A DNA stretch of 64,000 nucleotides from Klebsormidium nitens (GCA_000708835.1 DF237114.1:62001-126000), one strand, 5' to 3'. Positions 15,276 through 39,500 are shown, numbered from the stretch's first letter. The notes: generated by a model not told the origin, from the letters alone. A program made the numbers and translations.

Positions 15276-18200
15276 AGTGACGCTTCGATCCAAGAATTGC
15301 TTCGCCATGCACTACCGGTAGCTAGTGAACGGTACTCCTAATATGTACCAAGGTAGGTACTGACGGCCCAGTTTCACGATTTGTTGTATTGTACTGGTAG
15401 TTGTTCAGGTACCTGGAGTACCTAAACGCCTAATTTCCAACTTGCCTACCGTTTTAAAAGGTTTCATGAGAAACTCAACCACTTGTCAAATGTGGGTTCC
15501 AGGCTTGTGAGCTCCCTCTTCTTTCCATTAGGTACTCACCACTTTGAGGGTAAGGTATGGTATCCTGACCGGCATCCCTACCTGGTTTGAGAATATCGCA
15601 CTACCATTTGCCCCTGAACTGCATGAGGACGGTGGACCTGTGACTCTTACGGTGTGAGAGCTAGGAGCAGCTGCCAGCTCACAGGTAGGTGCAGCTCTGG
15701 AGCTGCGCAGTGCAGCTGAGAAACACCCTAGCTACCGAAATAGGTAAGTACAAGCTGTACATATCCATAGCGTATATTGTTCTATGTACCTGGTACCGAC
15801 GTGCACGCCCTCAGGTCCGCTTGACTACAAACTCATCTCGGGCAACAACGTCGCCTGTTTACCTAGTGCATGCATGCAGGCGCAACAAATCTAGGGTCAG
15901 CGAGCGAGTTTGCGAGTCCTCGTGAGTAGTCGCCACGTGGCAGTCTGTACAGGCGGACCCTTATGATCACATTCTTTGAACCCTGAATGCTGCAGAACAT
16001 GATACGGAGAACTACCGTAGCTTGGAGTTGAACACCCCCAGGCGTACTGGCCCCTGGGTGGTACTTCCCGATACAGTATAATACCGTATGCATTGATTCC
16101 AACACGCCACGGCGCGCATGATGCCAGTATGTACTAACATTCATCACCAAGAGTACCAGCTAGCCTCCGCCAACCAATGGTGCTGCTCATTCAATCAACC
16201 GGCCACCGGGCAGCACTGAGGCTGACTCGGACAGAATATTCTCGAGCCAAATGATCATTGCATCATTTCCGACGACTACCCAGGCCGGCTCTTTGCAATT
16301 GCTCTGATCGGGCTGCACAGTGCATTCATATTGTTGGGCAGGCCGGTCCGAGTCGCGGTACTTTACTGCGGCAGTACCTAGCTGGCTAGCTTGTAGTAGG
16401 AATGATTGTGATGTTTATCCTGAGCGCCAGATGTGAAGGCGCGGTAGGCTTAATGCGCCACAATAAGTCCTTTCAATAGCTTATGCAAGAGCCTGCTGTC
16501 GTTGTTAATTTGCGCCTAACGCCGCTGGCGGTCGATTCAATGTGTCGATCATCTGCCATTTAGTACAGATACCATAGCTTATGCGTATGGTGGCGATCTA
16601 TCTGAAAACATTGCCAACGACATCAGCACGACGTCTTACGTCCCTGTCACCTGATCCAAAGTCTGATGGTCGTTGTAAGTTGTGGCGGCTCGACCATATT
16701 GTGAATCATTCTGACAAGAAGCTCCGCAATAATCTCCGAAAGCGCCGCATTCCAAACTCGTCGGACCAAGCTGATTCTGCGCTTTCTCCCGCACCCTGGC
16801 GTAGCTGCAGCGCGCAAATCAGTAGACTCAACAGAAGCGCTTGTACCTTACCACATTGGCAGTCGCGATTACTGACGTCATCACTGATCCACTGAGAGCT
16901 CGATCCAGCTCAATGAGCATGGCTACCCTGTCGGCAAAAAGCGCGGTGTCGGGCGCGCAAAGCAACATCAGCGCGCGCGCCGCCACTGGAGGGAGCACCA
17001 CCGCGATCAAGGCGTATCCGGCCACACAGGTGAGCCGCGGTTTTCTGCTCGATCTTGTATGTTTTCACTTCGTCACGATCTGCCTACTATCAGGTGTGAT
17101 CAATTGACTCCTATGGAATGTTTCGGTTGAGTGGCAGCTCGCGCTTGGATCTTTGAGCTTGGTGGCAATGTAATGGACTCCTGTGCTTTGTATCGGCGTC
17201 TTCGATCTGTGATGTTCCATTTGCTTGGAGCGAGCTGTCCGGAAATTTCCCCCAGCTCGTATTCTCCTTGGCTGACTCACTGGATTTTTTTTCGCAAACC
17301 CCGTATTTGTCCTTTCAAAGGTATGAGCTTGGATTGGTCTAGTACTTGTCTGATATGCTGTATCGATCGCCAGGCTCCAATGCTGAAATCTGCAGCCAGC
17401 TGTGTAGTGTGAGTGCTTCCTCTGCTTCATGGCTATGAGAAAGCGTGGGCTGTATTCAAACCGTGTTTTCCAACTTGGGAAAACCACCTTGGCATGATCT
17501 TATCACAATCATGTAGTGAACTAAATCCTGGCTATGTGGGCATGTACGGATAATTGAACCTTCTCCTTGTGCTTTTACTCTCCTCGATGAACGTTAGATG
17601 CCTGGAGGTCACCCCCAAAGTTCCCCCCGGCCCCCGACACAATCGTATTCGAGCTGGTCCAAAGTCCATCTCCATCTGCATGCATCAGAACCTTAGGTGA
17701 GCTGGTGATCAATTTGGATCAACTGGCCCCTTTTTCTTTTCAGCAACAGCACTAACCGGGTGTTTGGTCTCTCCTCCAACACAGCTGGGTCGCTCATCAA
17801 GCCGGCGCTCGTTTACTGTGTCAAGGGGAGCTGAGAAGCGGGCTCCCGTTAACAAGTCAGTCAGGTGAGGTGTTGATCTGGCTCCAAAGGAGCTGGGGAC
17901 CAGTTGAGTTTGATAAGGTCAAAGCGATTTTTGCATTCCGGGAGAAGCGCCATTGGGACCCCTTGGTCCTGCGCGCATGGATCCAGAGCAGGGCAGTTGG
18001 ATGCTGACGATCTGATGGATCTGAACAGTGATTCCTAGCTATGTCTATATATGATAGAACCGCATGCGGGCCTATTTTGTCTATAATGGAACCGCATTCG
18101 GAAGGTCGAATAAAAACCGCCCTGCATTGGATACAAAAATATAGAGTGTCTGAAGCTCTGTGCAAGAAAACCACAAAGGTTGTGCCACTTAGTTTGCAAT

Positions 18201-18513: not shown

Positions 18514-21500
18514 GTGCATCGGGGTCGCGCCCCTTGGCGGGGGGCTCGGAGCACTCCCTCAGCAGCCGGCGGTCCCTCAATTGGGTGCTTCCCCGCAGCA
18601 GTTCACCCAGGGGCTTCCAGTCTCAAGCCCAGTGCCACAAGGCCTCCCCACTCCAAATGGACTTGGTAAGTTCTGGTGTTTGGAAGAGAGAGGCTACTCC
18701 CTGAGACATTGTGTGCCTGTCTTCAAGGTTGGCCTGGAAGTCTGTAGACTTATGGGCCAGGTGTTGTGACAGCTTCTTATGTGAACGAGGCTCACTCGAA
18801 GGTTTTTGAAGAGGCTGTAGCATCTATTATCGATCTCGAGTACTTTCCTTGCATGCAAAACAGAAGCCTCCGAAAAGACGAACGAATTTGGTCGACTTCA
18901 TTGCCCACTGATAATTGTCGTATGATTGAGAAGGACTTCCTGCTTTAGGTATCGGCCATGACTTCAGTTCATCCGATCCTAAGTGCTCCGACGCCCTGTG
19001 GACCTATTGTGCTTAGTTGATCACCCGTCAATGAAACTCTCAAGAAAGTTGACTCGCGCAAAGCCGAGACCCTGCCATCGTAACAACTGCTCTACGCTAA
19101 ACGTCTGTCCTGAAAACGAGAGAATAGCTGAGGAGAAATTGCGTCATTAAACGAGGGCATCATCAAACGAGGGCAGCTTATTTTGCAGGCGGGCAAGCGA
19201 CCGGGCTCCTTCCCACCGTGGAGAGAGTGGTTGGAGTCGGCGGCGCACCGGGAGTTTCCGGGGCGGGTGGCCTAGGTAACGCCCTTAATCGACACACATC
19301 GTGTTCAGCTGGCACCAGATCTCTGCTTTTAAGAACCGGATTATGCTCATCCATGCAGCCTTACACCAGTGACTTGGAAGATATAGCTGGCTGCCGTTGA
19401 GTCCGGCGCAGGAAGGAACGAAGAGCTTTACGATTTTCAAACAATTTCAGCTTTTCTGTAAAGCTGAGCTGGATTCGAACATTGATTGTCCAGCCAGAAT
19501 AAGAGTGTTTCGACTCGAAGATGACTTGCAACTGTGTGCCATTTGTTGACTTATGAATGTTCGTAAGTGAGGACGTTACCTTGAAAGGTTCGATTGGGTG
19601 AAGGTTCGCTTTTGTGAATTTATATCCACGTTAACGCAAGTTCACTTCGTGAATGCGTTAGGGATTCCCAGCTTGGCTGATGCTAGTAAGGCACATACCT
19701 TCCTGTGGACGTTGTTAATTTCGACGCAGCGTTTCAAATATCTTGGACGCAACCAAAGTGTGACTCTTGTACCACTCAGTCAAAACACAGTCCAGCTACG
19801 AGCCCTTGCCTACTTTCTGCACCTAAGCCTCGATTATCAGCGCGGCGCGACTTACTTTCGCAAATAAGGAAGCTTCTCGAACGCTTTTTAATCGCGTCAA
19901 CCGTTCTCTCGAGCTTCGTAGTTGTCTTCCAGTCAATAGGGGCCCTGTTGCTCTCTCTCCGTTTGTTACAGACGTTCCCGATTCCGTTTGTCATAGATAT
20001 TCCGTTCCGATTGTCAAACCCGTTCCGTTCCGTTTGTCAAAAATTTTTCGTTCCTTTGTTTACAGGTGGCGGACAGGCATCTGGGCTCCTGCCGACCGTG
20101 GAGCGCGTCGTTGGTGTCGGAGGGCAGCCGGATCAGTCGGGCCAACAAGGTAAGGACACGTGTCAATAAGCGTACCGCCATTTTTGCAACTGAGCTGGAT
20201 CACAAATCGAGTAAAGAGCGGAGAGAACGCGGTTGGCTGGGCCTCTCACTTTTCGACTGCCCACATGTCAAAATTGATAGTACAGCTGCGGTCTACTTGG
20301 TCTACTTTCAGTCGGCAGCTGTTTTAAATCCCCCCGACTTCTATCAGATTTGTTGCGACGTTGACACAGCTCGCCTCGTCTGTTTTACTTTGTCGGGACG
20401 TCCACTTCCACAGACTGTCCGACTACCACAGATCGTCCTCCTTCCTTATACCTTCTTCAGTGAGGACTCGGAAGCTGTATTTGTGTTAGCTTTTTGCCCT
20501 ACGTACAAATTTTCTGATGTACATTACAAAACGTCGTATCCGTTCCTACAGGCTACGCCCAGCAGCCCGGTGCTTACCAAGGCCAGAGCTCCTACGGCAA
20601 CGGCCAGGTTCAGCAGACGACAGATCCCTACTATGGGCAAAACGCGAACTATGGAGTAGCCCAAGCGCCTGGTAAGCGTTCTGCCGGCTAGTCGCAAACC
20701 AATGGTCGGAAAACTTTGGCTGAGGTTGAGTTCAGAGGATCTTCGCCAGAAGCTGCCCGTCGTTGTTTGTTTGTACGAACCGTTTGTTTGCTGCACATTT
20801 GGCGACGTAACGCTTGTACGTGCGTCTAAGAATTCCGCACCCAGATCTCGGGCAACATGCGGCGTATGTGTCGTTCTGCGCAAGCAGTAGTAGGGTTGTT
20901 ATTGCTTTTTGAGAGGAGCGGTTCTTCTGCACAAAGGGCTCTACAGTAGCCTATGGCTGTGGTTGTGAAAGCGACAGTTTTTGAGGGCATTTTATGCGCT
21001 GCAGGAAACCAAGCCGGTGGGCTCCTTCCGACGGTGGAGAATATCCTGGGCGTTGGAGGCCAGCAGGGAGGGCTCGGAGGCGTTGCAGGTAAGTGCTCGT
21101 ATGTGCGGATTTTGCTGCATCGTCCCGGCAAGGGCTGCGTTTACTTTCGCCTAACGAATAAGTGTGCCCCTTGAAAACAAACAGCTTGAATAGACAAAGG
21201 TATTAATGGGGAAAACTTAATCTGAATCAAGGCATTCTTGTTTCGGCGTTCTTGCGGATTTTTGTGGTGTGGGGCTTTGTCCTCGTTGGAGTGCCCTTGC
21301 AAAACTCGACACCGCCCATGACGCGTAAAGCGTCCACCGGTATAGCGTGTGCATCCTCATGGTCCTTCTTCTGTGTCGATTGATCGTCCTGTCCCCTGAA
21401 ACCGCGGGCTGGTAGGTCAGAACGAATCTGGTCAATTTGTCCCCGCCCTCCAGCTTCAACGCAATCCCAAACTTCTTCGATGATTTTCACATTGCCTAAT

Positions 21501-24500
21501 GCGCGCTCTTGTGCAGGTGGGCTGCCAGGTGGCGTCGGGAGTGCCGTCCCCGGGGGAGCCCTCCCTGGAGGTCTTCCTGGAGGTGTAGGGCAGCAACAAG
21601 GTTAGTTTTTTATTACCACACGTTATACGAAAGATTTCGGACTCAAACACCTATCTTAAAACCCTGCAGACTCGGAAGCATGTCAAAAAAGATGGGAGTC
21701 TTCAGAGGTTCCCTCGGTCTTCATCTCGCTTGGAGGCGGAAACACTACTCCTTATGCATGAATTTTAAGTTTCAAGACTGAAGGTGCTTCCTTCCTTCCT
21801 TGCTGAAGATAGCTGCGGAGCGAGAGACAGCTGCCGGTCGCACGGGGGGTCGTTGAGATTTGCGCAAGCCCGTTTGCAGTCTGGAGAACGCTTCTGCAAG
21901 GGTTGTTGAGAACGTGCCTGCTCTTTTGTTTTCAGTCAAAAAACACCGAGCTTTGCTCACGGTGGTGTTGCTTTCTTGGTCGCAGATTATGGTAACCAGT
22001 CCGGCGGTAGTCCGGCTACCGGCCTGCTCCCCACCGTCGAGAGAGTGGTGGGCGTTGGGGGCGACCAAGGTGACTTTGAGGGACAATTCAAAGAGTCGAG
22101 AACAGAAAGATAGGACTAGTGGATCTTAGAACCCCGTTGCGAGAATCCTTACTGTTGCTGGTCACAGACCTTTATATCGTACTCGAGTTCGCACACATAT
22201 CTGTGAGTTTTTAATGAATTTTCAAATGAGCTTAATGAGCTTAATGAGTTTCAATGAGTGTATCTCGTATTATGTGAACGTGCTCTCTCGCAGGTGGGCT
22301 TCCAGGAGGTGTCGGATCTGCCATTCCGGGGGGTGCCCTTCCTGGAGGCGCGGGCCAGCAACAAGGTAGATTTGTAAAGTACTCGATAAGCAATGGACTC
22401 ATGCAAGTATGTGTACGTAGAAGTGCATGAAAACCACCGTCAAGAATTATGAGGCTTCTTTGGGTCTCCTGCATTTGTGATGTTTCTTCTCAAAAAACTC
22501 AACAAGATGTTAGTTGTCTGGCAATGACTACTTCATTGTATATGAACAGTAGCTTTGGTAGCCCTCGTCTTGACAACAATGTCAAGCAGCGATTGTGTTT
22601 GTGGAGCTGCAAAACGACGCAGGGCGACTGCGTCTGATATCCTGGTTTCGATCTTTCGAAATTTAGTTCTGTGATATTTCAGAGGATGGTCCGCGAAGAT
22701 TGATGATATAACGAGGGGCGCGATCAAAGGAACTGGGTTGAGCAACCAAGAATTCGAGTGCCAAACTGGAGTTTTCACAATAATCAAAATAGAGTCGTGT
22801 TGAACGGCTGGTGACGTTTTTTTCGCAGGTTATGGCAACCAGCAGCAAGGCGGTAGCCAGCAGTCCGGCCTTCTCCCCACCGTTGAAAGAGTGTTGGGCG
22901 TTGGGGAACAGCAAGGGCAGCAGGGAGGCTTGGCAGGTGAAAGCGAACGCATATATATTGCATCGATTGATTGGGTGGACAAAACTACTTCTTTTTGCGG
23001 CTTTTTGTGGATTCAACCCTCTCGTAGGCTTCGTTCGTTCGATTGAGGGCGTTCTGGATTTTTCCCATATTGTTTGTGTGAGCGTTGCCCAGAGCAGGTC
23101 CGCCTTTTACAGCTTGATCTTTGCCGGCCATCAGATCGGGTATCCGTTTCAAATCAGATGTTAGATAGCTAGCTGCTTGCCTAAAACCATCTTCGTCCCT
23201 GAGTGTCAACTGTTAGTCCTCCAAAGAGGCATATCGACTTCATTAATTCTTTGGACAACACACTTTTCAAAAGGTACCCGATCATTGTCAGACTCTTCAA
23301 ATGACTACGGTCACAAAAGACTTTCTTTTACTTTGCTCAAAACCTGCAACCGTGCAGGTGGGCTGCCAGGTGGTGTTGGTTCAGCCATTCCTGGGGGCGC
23401 CCTTCCTGGAGGCGCAGGGCAACAGCAAGGTTAGTTCGTGGAAACTTGTTTGTGTTCGAGGTGTAGAACGTACGGTCAGACTTTGATTTTCGCAACTGGT
23501 CTCGTATCTAGCGAGAGTGCCGCATTCTTAAGAATCCCGGACAATCAACTGCCGCTCAGGAACTCACCATTGAGTGGTAGCTTCACAACCCATGCCTGAT
23601 CATGATACCAAACGATGCAGATGAAAAGAATGGAATGGATTCTGCTAATTGTTGGATGTTGTGCAGTGGATCGACACTTTTTGCACAATCCCGGAATAGT
23701 GAGACGTTTCCGCAAGCGTGATAACAGAACGCGCGCGCTCTCTCAAACACGCGAGCCCGTGTAATTAAAGAGCTCGTACCTTTGTGCTTGCAGGTTACGG
23801 TAACCAGCAGGGTGGTAACGGGCAGCAATCCGGCCTTCTCCCCACCGTCGAAAGAGTGGTCGGCGTTGGTGGGCAGCAGGGAGGTGTAGCAGGTAACAGC
23901 TGCGCAGTTTTCTAAAACCGCTAATTTGTTGAAGTGCGGCATCGTCTCCTTGACCTTGGTCACTTTACTTTCCGGCCTCTCGCGTAAAGATGGTATTCAG
24001 GATCTTCGTCAAGTCGGTAGAATCTTTCAAGCTCAAACCCTTCCGCAGTATGGCTTGTCTATACTCTTTGCTTTCTGCTTTATTCCAACTCACAGGTCCA
24101 TACGACTCGCTAGTTGCTCTGCATCTTCCTTCTCTTCGCGATTGTGGAATTCCGGGCTGCCACTCTTGGGTCTTTCGTGCAGTTTTCTCTAACTCGTCGA
24201 CTCTGGTCCCACAAAGCTGCCTTATTTCCTTTGTAAGTTACTCATCGCGCCCTCTCTCACAGGTGGGCTGCCGGGTGGTGTCGGGTCTGCCCTCCCTGGA
24301 GGCGCTGGACAGCAACAAGGTTGGTTCTCAGTTTCTACATTAAGCACTTACTCTGAGCCACGTCTCTTCATGACTTGTTGAATTGAACGTGCAAGAACAT
24401 ACTGTCGCTGATGAAATCCAGGATCTTGCCCTTGCTTATTCGATTTATTGCATGGCCAATCTGCGAAGCTAGCGAATCCTCTTTTGGCGGTACTACTAGT

Positions 24501-27500
24501 CCCTGCAGCGCCCTTGCTTATTCGATTTATTGCATGGCCAATTTGCGAAGCTAGCGAATCCTCTTCTGGCGGTACTACTAGTCCCATACTATATCGTCGT
24601 TGCTAAATGAAAGCTGCGCAGCGAAAGCTTCCGTTTTGTCACCAGAAGAAAGAAGTATGCCCGAGACCTGTATTGCAATTTTGACAAGGTTGCTGCAGCG
24701 ATGGAAGTGAACGAAGCACGCGCTGAATATCCCCCGTATCGAATCATGCACATAAACTCATATGAGCAAACGGTACGGTTTCGGTTCTACACAAATTCTG
24801 ACACGTTGCTTGCAGGTTATGGCAACCAGCAATCCGGCGGTGGCCAGCAGTCTGGCCTCCTCCCCACTGTTGAGAGAGTGGTCGGCGTCGGAGGACAGGG
24901 AGGCTTGGCAGGTAATTTTACACTTGTAACATGCTATTCCTTTCTCCGCTCTGCGCTATTCCGCTCTTCGCTCTCGCGCTATTCCGCTCTCGCTCTCCGC
25001 TCTCCGGTCTGCGCTCTCCAGCTCTCCGCTCACCGCTCTGCGCTCTCCGCTCTCGACATCATCTCCGCTCAAATCGGTTACAAATTTTGGGATCAGTGTC
25101 GTGCATGCACTTTGCTTTCGGCTTCACCATCCGGATTCGCAAAACCTGCCACGTCATCCAAACGTCGTACAACGCGCGCGCTCTCGCAGGTGGGCTGCCC
25201 GCTGGTGCAGGGTCTGCCGTCCCTGGAGGAGCACTCCCCGGAGGCCTTCCTGGAGGAGTGGGGCAGCAACAAGGTGGGCTTACAGAGGTTCTAATCGTGG
25301 AATTGCACATTCGGTTAAACCTGGCCGCCTAACCAGAGTTCACTTTGAGCCGAACACAAAACTTACCTTTGAATTTAGATCCTCCGATGATCCGCATGCC
25401 TCGCATCGAACGGCCCAAGTTCTGCGGCTCGAGAAAAGGTCTGCGACGGGGTCGATCGGACTCGGGTCAGGCGGCCAGGTTTGACAGAACCTGCAATAAA
25501 CCCATCTTGAGCCCATTCTCGAGTCTGTCTCTCTTGTGAGCTCCCGATTGAATGTGCCAAGGGATTTCGGACACCGATGCGGGAAAAACCCTGATGATAA
25601 GCTCTCCCTGATTGCGCTCTTGCTCATCCACTTAAGGCGGGTGGTTCCGAATTACTCCCCTAGCGACCGTAGCCCCATACATCGGTGTTGGCATGTGAAA
25701 GCTGCGAGCGAAAGGTTCTATGTGCCGTCAGAGAGCTCAGTGGCTATTCGAACGGAGCCTGCCCGATGAAACTTCCTACCAAAACGGATAAAATCGAAGC
25801 ATTCTGCAGGCGTTTCAGGACACCGAGTTGAACGCTCCTTCACCCAATCGTTTATGAGCCTCTTAGTGATAAAGCCGATTCGTGACGACTTGCTCGCAGG
25901 TTACGGCAACCAGCAGCAAGGCGGCAGCCAGCAGTCCGGCCTTCTCCCCACCGTCGAGAGAGTAGTGGGCGTCGGGGGACAGCAGGGAGGTGTGGCAGGT
26001 AATTTCACGCTTGCAATACAGCGCTACTCTTCTTCCTGGACGTTCTAACACGCGCCGGACGTCTTCTCTACTCAGGGTTAAGCTTTCAATGCGTCCCTTC
26101 GCAAACCTGACTTGTCTTTTGAAACTATCTCAACGCGCGCTTGTTTTGCAGGTGGGCTGCCGGGTGGTGTCGGGTCGGCCATCCCGGGGGGAGCACTTCC
26201 TGGAGGCGCAGGACAGCAACAAGGTTAGCTTTTACATACACTCGGGACTTAATCTATGAACTCATATCCTATGCTTTAGTGGACTCCTATCTTGAATGTG
26301 TCAACATCCTGACTTCGAGCGATCCACAAATGGTCGTAACCTTCTTGCCCACTTCAGGTGGTGGCTCTGAATAGTCACACGTCGATGTTGCTTTCCTAGA
26401 AGCTCCGCAGCAAATCTGTTTGCCGTTCGTATGCTTCTTTGAAGGAATTTCAATCGATGTTTGCCTGAGCCCGAATGCAGCTTTGAGAAGCCTTGTTCAG
26501 TAGAATCGATAAGAACGAAGTACGCGTTCAAAGAACACAAGGTCAGATCCTCGAGCACACGCTCGAAGAACACTGCATTCAAACCCTCCATTACACCATC
26601 TCGTATGAGCAGATGATGTGCACGTCGTTTTCAAACCGTTCGTAACTTCTTGCACGCAGGTTATGGCAACCAGCAGCAGGGGGGTGGCCAGCAGTCCGGC
26701 CTTCTCCCCACTGTCGAGAGAGTGGTGGGCGTTGGGGGACAGGGAGGTCTGGCAGGTGACTAAATCACTTCCCAGAGGCGGGTCCGCTCTTTATTGACCT
26801 CGAACCGTTCTCCTGTCTACTGACGTACGTTCATATGAGCCTAGCTGAGTGTTTCGTTGTCGATTACGGCTGGTAGGATCAGTATTTGCCTGCAGTTTGT
26901 TTGCCGAGTCGTACGACTTTAGATCTGACGTTTTTGCGAAATCTTTGACACTCTTTTCACGAACGCGTGCTCTCCCGCAGGTGGGCTGCCGGGTGGTGTC
27001 GGATCTGCCATCCCTGGGGGCGCAGGACAGCAACAAGGTTAGTCAAAACACTTTACCCGGTTTAGTTTAGTGACTTCACATTGTTCTTTGAAAGTTGCGG
27101 AGTGAGAGCTTGCCCCTGCCGCTGACATGCAATGTTTGGAAGAGCTGGATCATACATGGGTTGCCCAAGCCCGCCTTGTCCACTGAAAAGCTTCCTGCCT
27201 AGACTGGTGCGAATAATATTGTGCGCATGTTTAGGAAACTGTCATCAAAACGGTGCATCACTTCTTAGCAGATAACGTTGCTTTTGAAACGATTCGTGAT
27301 AACTTGCCCGCAGGTTACGGCAACCAGCAGTCCGGCGGTGGCCAGCAGTCCGGCCTTCTCCCCACGGTTGAAAGGGTTGTAGGCGTCGGGGGACAGCAAG
27401 GTCAACACGGCGGTATGGCAGGTGAATCTACAATCCTGATGCGGATCTACTCACCGCTGACGTTAACGTCACGCTTTCGGCTTACGTCCTTTTGACTGCC

Positions 27501-30500
27501 TTTCAAAAGTCGAGTTGGGACATTTCTTGCGGCTGGTACCTGATAACTTGCCTTCGAGTTTGTAAGTTTTGATGGACCCTCACCAGTGCAGATTCACCGT
27601 CCCCGCAAAAGTAACTCCTTTCCTCTTTTATCTCTCTCTCTCCATCTTTTCTTTTTTTTCTCTATTTTATTCCCCTAAAACCCCAAAAATTCTAAAACCA
27701 TAAAACCCTAAAAAGCTAACGCGCGTTTGTCTTGCAGGCGGGCTCATGCCGGGAGGTGCCGGGTCGTACCCCGGGTCGCGACCTGGAGAGCAACAGAATG
27801 GTTAGTCTATGATTGTTTAGTATTTAATTCGTACCTCTGTGATTGTGATTTGTGTATGAATGTCTAGTATTTCATTCGTACCTAGCTCTTCGTGAATTAG
27901 CATTGACGAAGGTATGCACTCATAAGAACAAGTAATGTCGTTCAGTCTCGTGCTCTAGCACGCGTTTTCAAGGCCAAATGTCGAGCAGAGAGAGTTGTCT
28001 CAAACCGGTTGCTTGCGCGCAGGTTACGGTGGCCAGTATGGCGGTAACCAGCAGTCGGGCCTTCTCCCCACCGTTGAAAGAGTGGTGGGAGTTGGTGGGC
28101 AGCAGGGTCAGCTGGGTGGCGAAGCAGGTACATTTTAGTTGCGAGTTAATATTTATTTCTGCTTTGGAAAACTGCCAGTACGTGTTTATTTGCTTGGCTA
28201 GAAACGCTCTATCAGTAGGTTCGTCGATGACCACCAAGTAAATGTGAGCGTTTAAGCCGGTTAGTATCTGGAATTATCCTCTCCCTCTTTTTGATTGCGA
28301 TGAAAAGGCTTCGAGGTGCACGTCCCGTTTTCACACGCGCCATCAGTTTCTTCCGTGTCCCTACCTGCTTCCTGCGAGACCCGTGCGCGCCCCTTCATGA
28401 TTTCCTGGCGGACCCGTGAAAAAGAACCTCTGAATCATGCTTCCCAAGCCTACAGCTGTCCTGGTTTCTCCTTGGCTCGTGATTGCAGATAAATGTTCTT
28501 TCTTATCTGAAACCCGTTCGATCTGATTTGTTCCATGCAAGAAGCAGTCTGAAGTCCGCTTATGACTCGCTCGAGCGCAGTCGCTCATTGGGCTTTCGCT
28601 CGTGCAGGTGGGCTGCCTGGAGGCGTCGGTTCCGGTCTTCCGGGCGGCGTTGGTAAGACAGCGGAATTACGACCTTTCAACAGTTCTCCCTTTCGAATGA
28701 AGCTATAACAATTCCCGAGCGATTTCAGGCTGTGCTGTGCGGCCAATACGTGTAGTTGTTCACTCTTGCCCACGATTCCTCCGCTTCGAGACCTTCACGT
28801 TGGGAATAAAGTATTTTCCTTCCGGCCAACCTGGAGTATAACTTACACTTCTCGAGCAGAAAAATCTAATGAATGCAGTGCTTCGAGCCAGGACGTTTCA
28901 AACATGTGTTCGACTTGACGATCGGTACGTCAAGAACCGTTTTGCCGTCTGCTCTGTTGGAAATCACAGCGATGTTTCGACTGAAATTGGCGCTTCTCTA
29001 GAGAAATAATGCGTGATGGATTGTCGTCTTTCCAGAATCTATTATCGAGGTTGGCTTTTCACTTGTGCAGGTGGGCAGCAGGGAGGACTTTTGCCAACCG
29101 TCGAGAACATTCTCGGCGTCGGCCAGCAGCCGGGTCGGGGCCAAAGCCAGGGTTACGGCCAGGGTTACGGTCAAAGCCAGGGTTACGGCCAGAGTTACGT
29201 CCAAGGTTACGGCCAGAGCCAAATCCAGGGTTACGGCCAGGCCCAAGGCCAGGGCCAGGGTTTCGCCGGTGGAATGGCAGGTAGGTCGGCGCTCCGATTG
29301 TTGCATTCTGGAAGCCGCCAAATCTGGTTTCAACCGTGCTTTCTTGGTGAGCCTGATCCTAAAGAACTCGACCAGTATCGCCCTTATACTTGCTGCCTGC
29401 AATTGGGACAACTAGGCATGCGTTTCATCCGACGTTGGTGGGAAGTAGACTGCAACAACATGCCTTGAGTTTTCGGCTTTCTCGACGGCGAAATTACCGT
29501 CGAGAGATTGATTTCGGCTCGATTGCTGCTTTGTGGGCTTTCTCATTCATGAGTCGAAGTAAGTTGCCGACTTCTTGCAACACTGGAAGTCGAATTTGAG
29601 TCTTTGAATGAACAGGTTTCCTTTGTCACCTCTGCAAACTTCTCAAAATTCAGCATAGCCTGTTTGCGTAGGGGTGTTTCTTATCCAAATGAATCACGAA
29701 TGCCAGCCCGGTGTGTCAGATTGAAAGTGTTTTAGGTAAGCTCAGGGAACGGAGCCACACTCAACGAAAACAAGCAGGGTATTCCAAACGAGCAAATTGT
29801 CATAGAGGTGAGACGCCTGGTGTGAGTTTTACCAAAAGGAGCCACATTCGACAAAGACGGGCGGGTTTGATTAATTCCGACTAAAATTGTCGTTAAATAA
29901 CACTGATTGGGTTTTGCCGTGCGCAGGCGGCCGTCCCACCGGTCTCCTGCCGACCGTGGAAAATATTCTGGGCGTCGGGCAGAGCCAGGGCCAGGGCGTT
30001 GCCGGCGGTGAGTGGCACAATAATACTAAGGTTCTTTTGGTTTAGTGAACAGCAAGCTCAGTGAACGGGTTGCATTTTGGTATTACCAAATATCGTGATC
30101 TAAAAGATCACCCGATCTGCACCCGTACCCACCGGCCTAACCCTCTACCCAATTCCACCCGTCTCGGTTCCTGTTCACTAAATGTTACCGTTCACTAAGT
30201 CGATCAAACTATACTTTCGTCCAACCTGCATTTTGCAAACGAAGAATGTTTCAAAGCCGTCTTGCGCATTTACTGCGAGAGGGCCTCCTACACAACTTGG
30301 CAATCCAGAAGCATTGCTTGATTGATGTCTGTCGAACTTGCTCGAATTCTGGGTTATCAATCTAAGCTGAAGAATTCTCTTCTTTCACTCATGCTCGTAT
30401 TTCAATCAACCTGTAGAGCGATGATTCCTCGGTTTTCGCAGGACTGAACCCAACCTTGTGCATGCAGGTTATCAGGGCGGCTACCAACAAGGCGCCTACC

Positions 30501-33500
30501 AGCAGGGCGGTTTCCAGCAGGGCGGCCAGCAGCAAGCTTCTAACCAAAGGGGTCCTGTCTACCAGCCGGGCGTTTACCAGCCTGGGCCCTTCCAACCGGG
30601 CACCGGTCAGCCGCCGGCCGTTGCCGGAAACGGGCGCCCAACCCCGACCCCGCTTCCTGCTCCGTTAACCGACACCAATGCGACCACTGGTACGTACCGC
30701 CAGAACCGTCCGTTCGGAGCCTCAATTCGCTCTGAATTTGTCACGTATGCCGGGGTCGTACGCAGACTGCTTGAAGAGCCACACTCACAAGGGCTGCTTG
30801 TTGAGTTAGTCATCTTGCGCGCGTCCTGTTGTGTTGACACGTGGCATCCCAAGCCGGGAGCCACATTTAGTACTGCAAGGCTGTTTTGAGCCACTGACTT
30901 TTGGAGTCTCACAGTAAAGCTTCGTATCAAGCCGTTCTGCGGCCAACCACTTTTTTCTGCAGTTTTTGACATGTCACCACGTGGCTTTCATGCAGGCACG
31001 CACAGCTGGACCACTGGGAGCTATGAGGAGGGCACTGCGCAGGTGCACCACCACGTGATCAACATCCACATGTGCGCTGATGGGCGGGTGGTCCCATCGA
31101 CAGGATTGACGAGTAAGTACACGCGATCGTCTATGTTGCTTCGAGATTCCTGCGATTGGACCGCTTTTTAGTTGGATGCGTTTGACTTGGATGAAAGATT
31201 CCTATCGAGGTTGCTCCTTTTGTGGGCTCTCAATCTGCTCTTCTAAGCCGCATCCCAAAGGTGCCGTATAGAGTTTACTAAAGAGCAATTTCGCTCCTTA
31301 TAGCCAACGTTATCCTTATACTTCAGCTTTTGAGATAACCTCGTTTCATTTGTAAAAGTATCCGTTAGCGAAAAAGAGGTGCAAGCTGCGCGAGAGCCTG
31401 CGTTCAAACCAAGCATCTGCTCTGACTAGAGTTTAGACATTCGAAGGTTCTCTTGTAGTAACGTAGAGCGTTTTTTGATGGCGGGGAAGCATATGATTCT
31501 ATTCGACGCCCCAGCTTCTTGCCGGATGAAGCATTGTGGTTCTCGCCGCTCACATCAATTCCTCCAGCGAACAGCCCAATGGCTTCGATATCCGCTCTCT
31601 TTATGAATCCCAGCCTACTAGCGATGGGGACGTATCGCATCGTGCGCCAAACGGGCCGTTTTGTGGTGCGCGTATCAGCTTTCAACTCCAAACTGAAACC
31701 GACATTCCAAGAATCTCAAAAGACATTGAGAGCGAATTGTCAAAAACTCCAGACGGCATCAGGAGCCAATTTTGAAGAACTCAGCCGACATGGAGAGCAG
31801 ATTTCAAGAACCTCAAACATTCATCTTCGTCTCCCAGGTGTCACCGGTAGGCCGGTCGTTCGTGTCAGGCTCCCGACCACCGGGGCCTCTGCTTTTAATA
31901 CTTGTACACTTGCTTTGATCTGAGATGACGTCTCTTCGCGCGCCAAATTTTGGTCATCTCCGGGGTGCGAGTGTCAACCCACAACAGCCATGTTTCACAC
32001 CCACTTCTCAATGGTTTAATACGAAGTTACCTCTCGTTTCCAGGTGTAACCGGTCGGCCGGTCGTTCGCGTGAGGCTCCCGACCAGCGGGGCTTTCTTGC
32101 ACGTGGAGGCGCAGACGGCCGAAGAGGTCTCCCAGTACTTCTTTTCCCTGGGGCTCGGCAGCGGGGCGCTCCAATCGTCGAACAGCGTCGGGCTGCTGCA
32201 ACCGGGCACTACGTTGACCCATGGCGCGGAGTATGTCTACATCTCAAGCAACCTCTCAGGTGGGTTAACGCTCTACCACAGAAAGATTTGGCTGCTAACC
32301 AGGCTCGCTAACCAATCTTCAGTCTGGTTCTTGACCAATACCCGCGTCATAGTCATGTGAGAAACCTGGTCACCACTCGATTCTGGACAGTTGACCAGCT
32401 TCGAACCAGCCCGTAACCTACTATGGGTAGCCGCCAAAACCCTTGTGTACTTACTGATTTTGACAGAACGGCTCGTCAACAAAGGTGGCGATGAAACGTT
32501 GGTCTGGTCCTTTATCACTTCCTTCGCCGGGGTTGGCACTAACGTATGATGATCAAGAAACGTTTATCTCGTAATTTCAGTATCCCAAATCCTTTCCACC
32601 TTTTCCAAGTGGTCTTTAAATTCGTAATCTATCTACGATCCCGTAGCTTGAAAGGTTAACGTCGTGCCCAATCACGAGGGTGAGAGACCAACAGAAACAC
32701 ACACCAGAACTTTCACAAAAGCCTTGCAGATGTGATAAACACGGCGTTCAGTCGCGAAGCTAAAAAATTTCACACATTACAATCCCAAAAGCTGACAGAC
32801 CTTGGAAAGCTTGGACGTTGAGAGTGATGTCGCGAATCTTTTCTCCCCTTGCTGACGTAACAACGCTTGCACTTTTCTACTCAGAATTCCCCCAACCCCA
32901 CTGCCAGTTGAAAACTGTCAGACCTGCGGACAGATCACATGAACTTTAATCGTGGTTGAGGCGGCTTATCGCCAATCGCAGTCTAATGCTTAACCCAGTC
33001 TAATGATCGAACCAGTCTGATGCTTAACCCCTTCCGTGCAGGTTTTGGCTCCTCGACTTCCGGAGGATGGAACACAACTTCCGGGGGATGGAACAATGGT
33101 GGTAAGAGCTCGAACTTGAATTTGCTCAAACTGACTATGGGGTTGCTGCTCGGACCTTGCGTTTCAGTTGAGCGCGCCGCATGGATACTAGCACGTCTTA
33201 TGGCAGATCAGGCTCGTCCTCTCTTAAGTCCAAACTCATCCTTGAGTTTGCACAGGTACATATAGAAGGTCGGAATCCAGATTGATTGGATTTGGTACAA
33301 GACCGCCATGGCTTGACGCACTTGAGCTTTCTCTAATGAAAGCAGCCGTGAACGATTGAATGAATAGAAATGGGAAAAAAACTGGTTTTTCGAACTTTGC
33401 TCCTTCACTTTCTGTCAGGCGTGGGCACCCTTACTCAGGCGCGTCCGATGATCGCCCCTGGATTTGGAAGCTTCGGTGAGTATTCGTAATGATTGATGGG

Positions 33501-36500
33501 AAACTAAGCGCGAAACTTTTACACCGGCGTCTCGTGTTACGTATGGGTCTTCGAAGGGTAACAGAGATGCGTCTGGAACGAAGTTAAGTGCGACCACAAC
33601 TTCCTGGTCATCGCTGCAAAAGGAAGGAGGACTATTGTTGCGGCGGCCTCAAGCCGAAATACCAACTTAACCGTTCCTCCGCACTGATTCAGCGTCCCCT
33701 TAAACCACCAACCCACTGCTTTTGAAGACGTCATTTGCGCCAGCCTGTTAACCAACCTCTTTAAGAGAGTTTCTAATCTACGCGTTTCTAAGAGGTTGCG
33801 TCTCCAGTCTTCCGAATCCTCCATCTTTATACCCTTTGGTTATCCTCATGTGCAGGCGGTCAATTCAACCAAGGCGGTCAATTCAACCAGGAGCAGTTCA
33901 ACCAGGGTCAATTCAGCCAGGGACAGTTCAACCAGTTTGGACAGGGCGGCGAGGGTTCCGTGATTACCGGCGGTGCTGTAGGCGGTAAGCACCTTCACGA
34001 CGCTTCTCCTTGAGACATCTGGTATAAGATCGAAAAAGTGGCCCGGAATCTGCGGTTCAAAAGCGCGCAGCCGTATGCCGCAGGAAAAGGTCGAGCACCC
34101 GTTGACACTAACTCAAGACAAGCGGTGGCGTAAGCTCTGGTTCAATTCAAAATTAGAGGGTATCGAACAGGTTTTGTCTGGACTGTTCACCCGATTCTTC
34201 AGACGTTCCCGCGTCTACAAACAAGAGCTTCTGTGAGCAGGCGCGACAGGTCGAAACTAGTGGCAGTTTCGTTTGACCACCCCGCACTTCCTTCGGTGTC
34301 CCCAGCTCCTTCTAAGCAACTCTCCACTCCGTTTTTTTCGTCAGCAATCCGGATGCAATTTGTCTTTTCCTTCTTCCCAATTAGCCTGTACGGAATAACG
34401 CAGCAACTTCTACGAGCTTCTGTTGGGCTTCGATTCCAATTTTGGAACTTTTGGTGTGGCATGCAACTCTGCGCGTGTTGGAACGGAGAACAATCTAGAA
34501 TAGGATTCAAAAAAAATCGAAGTTAGAGGTATCTAAATCTCACTCACTGCTCTCACAGGAGCGGCGTTCATCATCGTTCAGAGTGCCAACGGCATCGAGA
34601 CGATCCGCGTCCCGCAGCAGACCGTCGGCTCGGCCCTGGCTTACCTACGTCAGCTCGGGTTCGGCGAGGGCGTGCTCCTGGGCGTCGACGGAGCGCAGCT
34701 GACGTCACAGAGCATCCTGAGTAGTGGCGGACAGTACTTCTTCCGCACCCAGAGTGAGCAGTGCTTGCGTCAGCCCACATATTCCCGTATTGTTCTAGGA
34801 AGTTTTCTGGCAGAATGGTACTCGTGTGGTTCACAAGCGGTTCCGTTTGTTATTGCCATTCTGAGAAGGGTTATGCTTGAAGGCCTAGGTCCCCCTATCA
34901 CAAGAGTGTAGGCCCTACTAAACGTAAAATTGGTCTAACGGTAGTTTTCCCAGTTGGGCGCTAACCCTCAAAGCATCCCCCCCTGCACTTAACACGTGAT
35001 TTGAGACGGGTTTGATTCACTTTGCAACAGTCATAGAAGGATCACCATTTTCTTTCGACCAGATTGTACCCGTTTTGCAGATCGGATTTGACATGCTTGC
35101 CGCACGCATGCCTTGCTAATTAGTTTGGCTCGAAACTTTCGAGGAGATAGTTGCTGATGTATCATTCTCCTGTCACAGCTGATTTCAACTCATGGGGCTC
35201 GGGAGTAGCTACGGGGAGCAGCAGCGGATTCGTCACTTCCGGCCAGCAGGGCTTTGGTTCCGTCCAGCAGGGCTTCGTCGGCCAGCAAGGCTTCGGTTCC
35301 GGCCAGCAAGGTTTCGGATCCGGCCAGCAGACCGGCAATTTCACTTCCGGCCAGCAAGGCTTTGGTTCCGGCCAGCAGACCGGAATCACTTCCGGTCAGC
35401 ATGGCTTCGGTTCCGGCCAGCAGACCGGTTTTGGTTTCGGCCAGCAAGGCTTCACTTCTGGTCAGCAGAGCGGCTTCACTTCCGGCCAGAGCGGCTTCGG
35501 TTCCGGCCAGCAGACTGCCTCCATTACGTATCCTGCACCAGGTTTGTGTCTTTTGTTTTCTGAATTGACCCCCAATTGTTATTATGTCACGCGCTTCTGG
35601 TTACATCCCTATCACGGTAGGACTCGGCTGGAGAATCAGCTGAGTCTATTAACAAACAAGGATCAAACGCGCAGCTCGTTTCTTTTTCGAACGTCATTCG
35701 TACTTCGTAGAGATAGTTTTGATCTTTCGGCATGTGGAGTAGTGGTGCCGTTTATTCCTTTTTGTAAACCCCTCGAAAGCGTGCAGTGCAATTACCCCAC
35801 AGCTGGTAATATCCGGTGAGACCGACTCTCCGAACCCAGAGCGCTCAACCGCATCCTTCACCCGATCCTCAACCTATTTCATGACCCGCTTTCTAACCTC
35901 TAAACTCCGCTGATTTTAGGACCGTTTCAAATCATCCAACCCGGTTCATAACCTAATTTTCTAACCAAATATTCATTTTCCGTTTTGCAGGACCGTTCCA
36001 AATCATCCAGCTGCCCAGCCAGCCCGTGAATGTGACTTCGTTCCAGACTGTGGGCCAGATTCTCCAGATCCTGGCCACACGGCCGGGCTACGGACCGGGC
36101 GTGCTTCACGCCGGTAACGGCGTCGTTCTGCAGCAGAACGAGCTGGTGCTGCCCGGGAGGGACTATTTCTTCGTCGCCCAGTCGCACTTCTCAGGTAGGT
36201 CGGGTGATTCGAAGTCAAGAGTCTTGCGCGCATGTGGGCGACGCAGGACTTCGGCGCCGTAGTACCTGCCAATAGGCAATCGGATCCCTCCACTAGAACC
36301 AAAACTGCTTTTTTTCTCGTGAAGTTTTCAAATAACGAAACAGAACCCAATTTGACCTTCTTTCTGAGCCAGCTTGTCACCTAGTAGGATAAGAGTAGGG
36401 TTGGTACAATGTAAACATGGTCTGTCCATTCAAACAAGTGGACGCAAAGGCAACTCTTCGTGGGAAGTCCAATTCAATCGAAATGAATTTTTTTCATAGC

Positions 36501-39500
36501 TGCTCCATCCTCGCTAAATCTACGTACGTTTCTGCGTACTTTGGCCCGAGACTGCAGGTCGACGACTGACGGATACCCTCGTATTCTGACAGCTCGTTCT
36601 GGACCTTCAGCGAACTTGATTTGTTTTCAACAGGAATCTTTCTCTGCGGATGCAAGACTTCTCCAGGATCTCATCGCCTCGCAAAAGGACTTTTCTTGCG
36701 TCAGATTAATACTAAGCATGTGTGATCCCTTGTGGTTTGCAGCATCCAGCTTCAACTGGTTCACGTCGGGCGGCTCCACGGGAACGGTGGGCACTTCCGG
36801 TGGCATCGGAGGTCAGACCGGTACGTTTTTCCACAGCCACTTTTTTGGATTTTCCTTTGTTCGATTCTATGAAGTAGTTGTAAAACAACGCTCGTCAAGC
36901 AGGGGAGGCCGTTTCCTGCTTACTCTGCCAAGAAGTGACGACACCGAATAAGGCCGAGCAAAGACTTCATGATCAAAAAAACGAGAAAATACCTTGAGGA
37001 CCAGCCAGTAAAGTCTTGGGGATTTGCATTCAAGAATGGTAGCTGGCAACCTGGAATTGTACCGACGACCCCGTTCTCGAGTTCCAATCCGCCTCCCATT
37101 ATGATGCGTAAACTCCCACGTATCTTCAGAGTGATTGCCTGACCGTCTTTGTAGCTGAAGTCATCAAATGATTGACTCCCCTCCGATCAAGCTTTCTGCC
37201 CACGCGGTTCAAAAATGCAAACTCCCCTTGATTCGGCGAGAGTAACCTGGATTTGCCAGGAAACGTCACCCATCTGACGTGTGATTGCGTTTCCTCGCAT
37301 CTGGATCGTTACGGAATGTCACCCATCTGACAAGAGTCACTGCGTTGTTTTGCTCGCAGGTAACCCCGCCACGACCAGCCCCGAGATCCGCATCACCAAC
37401 CCCCGGGCCGGGGTGTCCATGATTGTGCGCGCGCAGACCGCGGCGGAGGCGCTGGCCACGCTCAAGCCGTTCATGGGCGAGGGAGTGCTTCAGTTCCCCA
37501 ACGGAACGCTCGTGAACCCCAACGCCTTCCTCTCGCCGGGGCTCGTGTACACCTTCGTGCCTAGCATCCCCAGTAAGTCGTTTGTCCTTTGAATATTCTG
37601 CTTTCCAAATCTGAGGATGGCGAATGTGAATCGAAATGTTCTAGCAGCAGAAGCAGAGCCTGCTTACCGATTGAAGAAGCAGGTGGACGTGCAAACGCAG
37701 TGACTTTTAATGTGTATTGTGATGATCAGAGGAGGAAAGGGAAGCTCCAAAGAAGTAATGAGCGGGAGTGCGGATCTATAAGGTCTCCTCACGACTGTTG
37801 TGTGCCCATGTGCAAGAGCAACACGCGTCGAAGTCTTCTCGTCTGAACTTCAATGGTGAACTCAAGTATCGTTGAGCTTTACATCGTTGCTTTTGGGAGA
37901 ATGTAACGTCGGTTTAGGAGGATGTGACGGTTTGCTGATGACGCACGTCACTAAGAAAGCAACCGTTGGTACAGGCGGTATTGTGCCTGGAGGAGGCCAG
38001 CAGCCTGCCGGCGGTATCGTGGGTGGAGGTCAGCAGCCTACCGGCGGTATCGGTGCAGGTGGGTATTGCTGAATGAAAGTTGCACCCAGAGTTTACCGTT
38101 TCATTCTCATTCTTCCAGAAGGGGAGTCTGGCGGTCAGAAGACGCTTCGCTGGGTCTAGCCTCAAACTACGAGCCATGTTCAAAGACAATGCGCAAATCG
38201 CCACCGCTCCACTATTCTCAGTACGTTGAACCCAAGCAATGCGCACAATCCAGCAGTTGGCAACAATTGGAGTCACGGACGCCAGAAGGAAAAGTTAAGA
38301 GTTTCTTTCGTGGCTGCTCAGCGAAGCTTTGATGCAGAATGAGCCGATCACAGCTCGTTGTGCATCGTATATTTGTTCTGTTCTCCGCGTGATTTGTGGA
38401 TGGTGTCGAGCGTCGGATGCTTCACGGGTCCCATCATTTTGTAGTCGAGAAGAAGTTTCGAGGATGCGTGACTCAGAAGATGCTGCCCAAGTTGCCTTGG
38501 CGTAGCTCCCCTAGTAGCCTCTTCCTTCATTGATCCGGTTACTCTGCCGATAAACGCTTGATTGCAGAATAAGTTGTAGATGAAACCTGGCAGGTCTTTC
38601 TGTTCATCTTCCTGAGAGCACAATACCTCCGAGCGTTCTCGCAAGTGCAACTTTGCAAATCAGATTTCTATCTTAAAATAGTCACTGAAAGTCATTCCCC
38701 GTAGACTTGCATGTCAGCTTCCAGGGGAAATCCAGCGGCCAATTTATCGGTGTTCCATTTGGGCCACATTCGAATTTTCAAAAACTAGTGGGCACTTGGA
38801 CGCTCAGCGAAAAGTTGAAAGTGCCCAGTTGCTCGAACTGTGACCTTAACCGCGCCCAATTCACGTCGCCGCAGGTCCGACAAACGGCGCGGCGAAGGCT
38901 ACCGGTCAGGTGGTACGCATCACCGACCCCTCGGGAAATGTTGTGGCGACCGTCGAGCCGCAGACCGCGCAACAGGCGCTGGAGTACCTGAGGCGCAGGA
39001 TCGGGGACGGAACTCTGGAGTACCGGAACGGAACCGGATTGGCGCCCTTCACGCCTCTGACCGCTGGGATTGACTACGTCTTCAGACCGGTCACGCAGCC
39101 AGCCGTCCGGCCTCCGGCACCGGTCACGCCACCCACAGGTACGTACCGGATGTGATTGCACGGTTCCAACACGTCTGCTCCTAAAATCTTCACATCCCAA
39201 AAGCCTCAATGTTGACCTCTCGCTAATGTCGTGGGCGCTTTCACTGGTGACGTTGGTAGTTCTAAGTAATTGAAGACTTGCTTATTGTGTGAAATTCGCA
39301 CCCGCTTCTCTGGCAACCGGCTGCTGCGGTAATCCGCGTGAAAGTTCTTCTAGAAAGGTTCACGTTGAGCGAACGTACCCGCACAGGTGTCCCCGCTACC
39401 TATCAGGACACACAGGAATCTCTTCCCCTCACTTGCTGCCGGTTGTGGGCGCCCGACTTGCTGTTCATTACTAATTAGTTTCACCCGGTGTTTCCTAAGC

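Follow-up and report, generated by a model that had tools for sequence, protein, structure and literature searches.

In a stretch of 64,000 nucleotides from the alga Klebsormidium nitens (GCA_000708835.1 DF237114.1:62001-126000), hereafter termed the window, we have identified a large gene on the plus strand that contains an array of two types of short exons, designated A and B, which follow each other in strict alternation and encode peptides whose substitution patterns indicate strong purifying selection on both. We favour a reading, to which we assign a probability of about one half, in which this array encodes, within one large modular protein, a multivalent region of stickers and spacers.

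Between positions 21005 and 28652, a six-frame motif scan combined with splice-site mapping located 18 short exons, nine of each type, in the order A0, B1, A1 and so forth up to A8, B9 (Table 1), an arrangement that would be expected from a random order of nine A and nine B exons with p = 2/48620. Throughout the window, the six-frame scan found the LLPTVE-type peptide of the A exons and the GGLPGG-type peptide of the B exons on the plus strand only. The succession of nine A/B pairs had been proposed in an earlier note prepared from the DNA sequence, and it is borne out by the motif scan, the splice mapping and the spliced RNA contigs described below. The range given there holds for the alternating pairs, whereas A-type exons that are not paired with B lie outside of it at four more places. 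All 18 exons of the array are bordered by ag and gt, have a length divisible by three and are of phase 1-1, and the proposed split within Gly codons applies to 17 of them, which open with the last two bases of such a codon, whereas A1 starts with Asp.

The A exons share a 13-residue core of the pattern GLLPTVE[RN][VI][VL]GVG, which occurs 13 times per protein with a distance of 51-63 residues between successive cores within the array. The core had been described as an invariant LLPTVERVV, which is correct insofar as 10 of its 13 residues are the same in all copies, whereas A0 carries an ENIL variant that is also found in A9 and A10. The array accounts for 495 of the approximately 1,996 residues of the protein and is composed of 36% Gly, 15% Gln, 10% Val, 9% Leu and 7% Pro. 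It contains 9 Arg, no Lys, 12 Glu and 2 Asp, roughly a single Glu and a single Arg in each unit, and its net charge by residue counts is small and negative. Each A exon contains one Tyr in a GYG context, and B exons encode 15, 19, 21, 24 or 28 residues, and the tails of the A exons are variable, too.

The units resemble each other at the DNA level by 72-87% inside exons, a similarity that ends about 20 bp outside of them, the introns being unrelated. This confinement indicates that the conservation originates from selection on the peptide and not from recent gene conversion, which was rejected as source of the repeat identity in view of the heavily diverged synonymous sites and the unrelated introns. 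In the core, synonymous variants are found at every codon, and pairwise codon comparisons yield 527 synonymous and 96 non-synonymous differences, the latter nearly all belonging to the linked ERVV/ENIL alternative. The same pattern is found in the B exons, where B2, B3 and B6 encode the same 24-residue peptide and differ from each other by 10-11 synonymous changes over 23 codons, without any replacement. The strong selection on the core fits its earlier proposal as candidate association or binding motif, a function that forms part of the reading we favour.

A related locus, reached via two open reading frame (ORF) fragments, is available from a JGI metagenome contig (L002, L004) and a Logan assembly (L001). 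Collinearity between this locus and the window reaches from 16.8 kb to 44.4 kb or beyond, and the locus encodes an identical core. The order of A-like exons, A/B pairs, a B9-like exon and two ENIL exons is also kept. Compared to the nine A/B pairs of K. nitens, the relative contains about six, and the flank preceding its core shows a different consensus. Judged from these two loci, whole A/B units have evidently been gained or lost in evolution, which is possible because the exon phases are symmetric.

To our profile of 12 A exons, a search of 1.84 billion representative proteins, which is subject to the caveat of the HMMER composition filters, returned ten matches, two of them real, and these are the two ORF fragments of the relative; a full-length protein bearing the array was not found among these sequences. 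The repeat region thus seems to be absent from public protein collections and to be unannotated. The search for LLPTVE-type motifs in other proteins, which the earlier note had called for, was in this way positive for the relative and otherwise found only short-motif matches in TPR repeats. The latter are actinobacterial repeats with the sequence ALLPDVERVLGP, which share the LLPxVERVLG pattern and were the sole multi-copy matches of the search. They were rejected as homologues, being short-motif matches in bacterial helical repeat proteins with unrelated flanks and a different repeat length, and we attribute the likeness to chance or convergence over a short stretch. As TPR repeats are helical, it provides a hint that the core can be helical too. 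Searches of single A, B and linker exons against Pfam and NCBIfam gave nothing meaningful, a search of PDB sequences with the A and B profiles no match at E <= 10, and a feature search of the ESM Atlas with the exon at 29071-29280 no usable match. Scanning metagenomes with the A profile yielded 51 matches to the pattern, none of which was retained by tblastn, owing to the shortness of the query.

Evidence for transcription comes from spliced RNA contigs of three runs (X1-X3), all from one study (P1), which contain about 14% of the sampled words from the window, a fraction that is close to the exon share. When aligned to positions 22700-28699, the contigs cover the exons with zero depth over the introns, and each of the GT..AG joints from A2 to B9 is seen in them exactly at the predicted borders. 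Further upstream, the order A0, B, A1, B, A2 follows from their loose ends and inserted letters, and a loose end behind 28654 corresponds to the beginning of the exon at 29071. The gene is therefore expressed, and its splicing agrees with the deduced exons. Contigs starting at 27337 have a length of 4,534-4,576 nt, and the exons from 27337 to the stop codon total about 4,164 nt. The difference of about 0.4 kb is plausible for a 3' untranslated region, and the array and all downstream parts thus most likely reside on a single mRNA.

Two further observations concern the exons and introns of the array. Of the B exons in the RNA contigs, that between A0 and A1 aligned to B5 (25186-25273) without a mismatch and that between A1 and A2 to B6 (26150-26221), while genomic B1 and B5 differ at 14 of 84 bases and B2 and B6 at 10 of 72. 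This placement may reflect a strain difference, gene conversion, a chimeric contig or a quirk of the tool, and it does not affect the A/B order. The introns contain an 82-bp tandem duplication with 97% identity and a CTCTCCG-type microsatellite (24428-24585 and 24933-25071), the latter of which by chance keeps the frame open across the intron between A4 and B5 and generates a mechanical ORF of 197 residues (24701-25294).

The deduced gene extends from 16913 to 44450 and consists of 43 exons with a coding sequence of about 5,991 nt without internal stop. This chain, which was curated by hand using the conservation in the relative, open frames, GC content at third positions and splice phases, runs in frame and with ag/gt borders from the ATG at 16913 to the stop codon at 44448-44450, and 36 of its consecutive exons are of phase 1-1. 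From start to end, the gene encodes an N-terminus resembling a transit peptide, a Pro/Gln segment, a region of 13 A cores and nine B exons, linkers, five beta-grasp domains, a Pro-rich exon and two DUF642-type domains. The linkers past the array are of Tyr/Gln, Trp, QFNQ and GFGSGQQ styles. The same reading chain includes low-complexity exons that differ in style, located at 33042-33101, 33856-33984, 35179-35541 and 29071-29280, with GGW, QFNQ, GFGSGQQ and GYGQSQ motifs, of which GFGSGQQ is similar to the cohesive FG repeats of nucleoporins and GYGQSQ to the low-complexity domain of FUS.

Table 1. Exons and domains of the K. nitens gene in window coordinates and the evidence for each.
Feature	Position	Strand	Evidence or remark
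Exon 1: start codon, Ser/Ala/Thr-rich N-terminus	16913-17029	+	ATG kept in L002, where it is preceded by an in-frame stop at a distance of 14 codons
Exon 2: Arg/Ser-rich, second part of transit-peptide-like N-terminus	17785-17864	+	acceptor and frame kept in L002
Exon E1: Pro/Gln-rich	18514-18665	+	in-frame chain
A-2: A-type, no B after it	19189-19275	+	motif and splice mapping
A-1: A-type	20066-20149	+	motif and splice mapping
Tyr/Gln-rich exon	20552-20671	+	splice mapping
A0 (ENIL variant of core)	21005-21088	+	motif and splice borders; 3' end seen in RNA contigs as a loose end adjoining a B exon
B1	21517-21600	+	motif and splice borders
A1 (starts with Asp)	21986-22069	+	motif and splice borders; first 33 nt found in RNA contigs
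B2	22294-22365	+	motif and splice borders
A2	22829-22936	+	splice borders and RNA contigs
B3	23358-23429	+	splice borders and RNA contigs
A3	23794-23892	+	splice borders and RNA contigs
B4 (short form)	24263-24319	+	splice borders and RNA contigs
A4	24816-24911	+	splice borders and RNA contigs
B5 (long form)	25190-25273	+	splice borders and RNA contigs
A5	25900-25998	+	splice borders and RNA contigs
B6	26152-26223	+	splice borders and RNA contigs
A6	26660-26755	+	splice borders and RNA contigs
B7 (short form)	26981-27037	+	splice borders and RNA contigs
A7	27314-27421	+	splice borders and RNA contigs
B8 (divergent B)	27738-27800	+	splice borders and RNA contigs
A8	28023-28127	+	splice borders and RNA contigs
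B9 (short; last exon of array)	28608-28652	+	splice borders and RNA contigs
A9: ENIL core, then GYGQ repeats	29071-29280	+	motif; start seen as loose end in RNA contigs
A10: ENIL core	29927-30007	+	motif and splice mapping
Tyr/Gln/Pro-rich exon	30468-30689	+	splice mapping
Exon G1, then beta-grasp exons separated by Trp/Phe/Gln-rich linker exons	30996-39138	+	all phase 1-1
Five ubiquitin-like beta-grasp exons	D1 32044-32259, D2 34559-34753, D3 35991-36194, D4 37360-37572, D5 38875-39138	+	each a single phase 1-1 exon
Pro-rich exon	39708-39971	+	in-frame chain; just upstream of DUF642-type domains
Two tandem DUF642 / choice-of-anchor-C domains, then stop (four exons)	40702-40907, 41487-41778, 43122-43384, 44103-44450	+	Pfam, TIGR04362

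By its composition, the N-terminus looks like an organelle transit peptide and not like a signal peptide. Its first 65 residues contain 48% Ser, Thr or Ala, exons 1 and 2 together encode 10 Lys or Arg and a single Asp or Glu, and the highest mean of the Kyte-Doolittle hydropathy over nine residues is 0.8, a pattern that is kept in the relative. No h-region of a signal peptide was found in the composition and hydropathy of these two exons. A twin-arginine (Tat) signal for transport into the lumen at the sequence SRRSF of exon 2 was considered and rejected, as the relative is without RR at this place and no h-region follows. In the same part of the gene, a palindrome, TGACGTCA, is located at 16874-16881 in a conserved 5' block about 35 bp ahead of the start codon, with TGACGTTA being found at the matching place of the related locus. 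Intron 1 contains a block (17220-17311) with 72% identity to the relative over 93 bp and no obvious open frame, which may be a regulatory element.

Downstream of the array, the five domains D1-D5 are divergent, comprise 64-87 residues and display 74-94% amino acid identity to the relative (L002, L004). AlphaFold2 predicts their structures with a mean predicted local distance difference test (pLDDT) score of 83, and the top matches in Foldseek are ubiquitin and NEDD8 at a template modelling (TM) score of about 0.7. None of the five matches a Pfam family. In a scan of metagenomes with D3, the sole candidate, a 3-kb contig (L003), was found to be unrelated on reading. The two C-terminal domains match DUF642 (Pfam PF04862), with single exons scoring 29.7 and 41.4 bits at a cut-off of 27. 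Against TIGR04362, the half-domains of the first add up to 93 bits (35.8+57.4), below the cut-off of 120, and those of the second to 123 bits (52.2+71.1), above it. For both domains, scores are higher with the bacterial choice-of-anchor-C model than with DUF642. Their presence in an alga is notable because a review describes DUF642 proteins as specific to spermatophytes, thus restricted to seed plants, where they are cell-wall proteins (PMC6651502). With these wall proteins and with bacterial choice-of-anchor-C proteins, the algal C-terminus shares two tandem domains matching PF04862 and TIGR04362. Plant DUF642 proteins are small, consist of two domains and carry a signal peptide, whereas the algal pair concludes a protein of about 2,000 residues without recognisable signal peptide.

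In the sticker-and-spacer organization that we favour, the 13-residue core contained in each A exon would act as sticker, probably in the form of a short amphipathic helix, and mediate specific association or binding. Flexible spacers would be provided by the Pro/Gly-rich B exons together with the flanks rich in Gly, Gln and Tyr, setting the cores about 51-63 residues apart. The 13 cores of a chain could cross-link a partner or the protein itself into a reversible network such as a gel, a condensate or an elastic matrix. Past the array, the chain would continue with further cohesive linkers, aromatic and Gln-rich, and with folded beads, and the two C-terminal domains of carbohydrate-binding type could anchor this network to polysaccharide. 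Since every exon is of phase 1-1, A+B units may be gained, lost or skipped without a break of the frame, which would render the valency changeable in evolution. Disorder, sticker function, network formation and anchoring are thereby features that we infer.

An AlphaFold2 model of a single A exon, calculated with its paralogues as alignment, has its best confidence at the core, with a block of pLDDT 70-79 and a helix comprising the five residues VERVL (19-23), flanked by regions of about 48-56. Some observations weigh against the proposed organization. The confidence of this model, which was folded out of context, is only moderate, with a mean pLDDT of 64.5. The conservation of B equals that of A in strictness, more than a spacer would need, and B may have a specific role or structure of its own. 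Finally, of the 24 runs listed under this species, 21 (X4-X24), from eight of nine studies, contain almost no sampled words; expression may thus be restricted to some conditions or strains, with contigs being unable to show absence.

Among the alternatives, the one that survives best, which we nevertheless regard as unlikely, is an extracellular elastomer of the cell wall similar to elastin or resilin. In such a protein, B would be elastic, A would provide association or cross-linking via its core, Tyr or Gln, and the DUF642-type domains would anchor the chain to wall polysaccharide. This idea has its origin in the tropoelastin analogy of the earlier note, which stands with respect to the architecture of the gene and fails at the level of the protein. 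In tropoelastin, all splice sites are of phase 1:1 with one exon per domain, and the replicated region arose through the copying of pairs of hydrophobic and cross-linking exons, which permits cassette-like splicing (bioRxiv 10.1101/2024.12.03.626628). The algal gene resembles it in its short phase 1:1 exons encoding one domain each, in the two alternating domain types found in the 18 exons of the array, in its growth by replication of exon pairs with a copy number that depends on the species, and in the abundance of Gly/Pro and hGG-style motifs in one of the domain types. To our knowledge, few genes outside vertebrate tropoelastin contain two tiny symmetric exon types that alternate and were copied as pairs.

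At the level of the protein, the array contains no Lys and is thus devoid of KA/KP cross-link domains. This absence excludes elastin-type cross-links as well as Gln-Lys links within the array. The basic and Ser/Thr/Ala-rich N-terminus, with its hydropathy maximum of 0.8 in exon 1, does not contain the hydrophobic core of a signal peptide, and the C-terminus is formed by DUF642-type domains instead of the two-Cys/RKRK domain. The array is moreover rich in Gln and constitutes one part of a protein with folded domains. Both of its exon types are conserved residue by residue, whereas tropoelastin has undergone extensive sequence diversification, in its hydrophobic domains especially (bioRxiv 10.1101/2024.12.03.626628). 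Homology to elastin was detected neither in Pfam, nor in PDB sequences at E <= 10, nor in the profile search of 1.84 billion proteins. The likeness is thus confined to the design of the gene, and membership in the tropoelastin family is excluded.

Convergent elastomer design has the status of a hypothesis. Rauscher et al. in 2006 reportedly placed the line for self-assembling elastomeric proteins at a 2P+G value of about 0.6. The B exons, with 0.67, lie above it, in line with the comparison of their Pro/Gly-rich motif to elastin hydrophobic repeats, whereas the A exons (0.39) and the whole array (0.51) lie below. The array shares its richness in Gly, Gln and Pro, its GYG and PGG-type motifs and its small number of charges with resilin, high-molecular-weight glutenin and flagelliform silk, and the Tyr in each A exon would suit a wall elastomer of this kind. 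We know of no strictly invariant hydrophobic or charged core such as LLPTVERVV in these proteins, and no homology to their repeats was found in Pfam or in the profile search. A location in the wall would agree with the Pro-rich exon just upstream of the DUF642-type domains and with the assignment of these domains to cell-wall proteins in seed plants (PMC6651502).

Next in order, and likewise doubtful, is a scaffold or tether of the plastid, in which the protein would be imported into the chloroplast, where the 13 cores bind a multimer such as Rubisco and the C-terminal domains bind starch. We place even less trust in its specific version, a giant chloroplast tether with cores binding Rubisco or another stromal multimer and DUF642-type domains holding starch, which would act as organiser of pyrenoid matrix and starch in the streptophyte lineage, independent of EPYC1 and SAGA1. 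The N-terminus described above, with its conserved composition and the missing h-region, counts in favour of this reading, although the assignment of targeting is based on composition. A search for pyrenoid linkers (FLIPPer) relied on structured elements that a mostly disordered protein repeats at distances of 20-120 residues (PMC11570498). The core spacing of 51-63 residues falls into this range, with a short helix of pLDDT 70-79 as recurring local structure in a putatively disordered chain, but the complete protein additionally contains seven folded domains. The combination of Rubisco-binding motifs with starch-binding domains has its precedent in SAGA1 and SAGA2 (PMC10473226). Like these two proteins and the linkers EPYC1, CsLinker and PYCO1, the algal protein would join a recurring, short and locally structured motif to a possibly plastid-targeting N-terminus, and like SAGA1 and SAGA2 it contains a domain of carbohydrate-binding type.

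It differs from these linkers and tethers in that it shows no sequence relation to them, contains a motif that looks different and is much larger, with five beta-grasp domains. The core presumably bears no likeness to the Rubisco-binding motif of Chlamydomonas. EPYC1 is strongly basic, whereas the array is slightly acidic by residue counts, and starch binding is not a known property of DUF642-type domains. The absence of the transcript from most of the listed runs would be unexpected for an abundant and constitutive pyrenoid protein, with the same reservation concerning contigs as above.

It appears improbable that A and B together form one structural repeat of a regular fold, such as a Gly-rich bundle of polyproline-II helices, a beta-spiral or a solenoid. 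The residue-for-residue conservation of both exon types with plentiful synonymous change is as in a packed repeat, and the very high Gly content would also suit such a structure, but the range of B lengths and the variable tails of A fit a strict repeat poorly, and the single A exon shows low AlphaFold2 confidence outside the core and has no match in PDB or Pfam. A passive flexible linker, kept for its length and composition, is very improbable despite its low-complexity sequence and the copy number that differs between species, because a constraint on composition would not yield B exons without replacements or a core with ten invariant residues across 13 copies and two species.

Elsewhere in the window, downstream of the gene and likewise on the plus strand, an exon encoding a peptide similar to ribosomal protein L24/KOW is found at 52037-52144 and a gene encoding a hydrolase of the HAD superfamily at 56809-58796 (Pfam HAD_2, E = 1.9e-20). 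In the 17 kb upstream of the gene, a scan of GC content at third positions gave no clear coding signal, and an Rfam search of the entire window returned no match.

The constancy of both peptides under selection makes a defined motif available for tests. Being apparently unannotated, the repeat region would be invisible to proteome pipelines that seek repeat-based linkers or cell-wall proteins. If located in the cell wall, the protein would be an elastic or gel component based on protein in an alga that tolerates drying through flexible walls. If located in the plastid, it would be a candidate pyrenoid organiser in the lineage closest to land plants, for which our literature search found no report of a pyrenoid linker, and in a pyrenoid tether the cassette-exon array of tropoelastin style would let valency change by whole units. 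At either location, the array would offer a putative sticker-and-spacer polymer of natural origin, having 13 identical stickers and a number of units that varies between nine and about six in two species, as a system for studies of phase separation.

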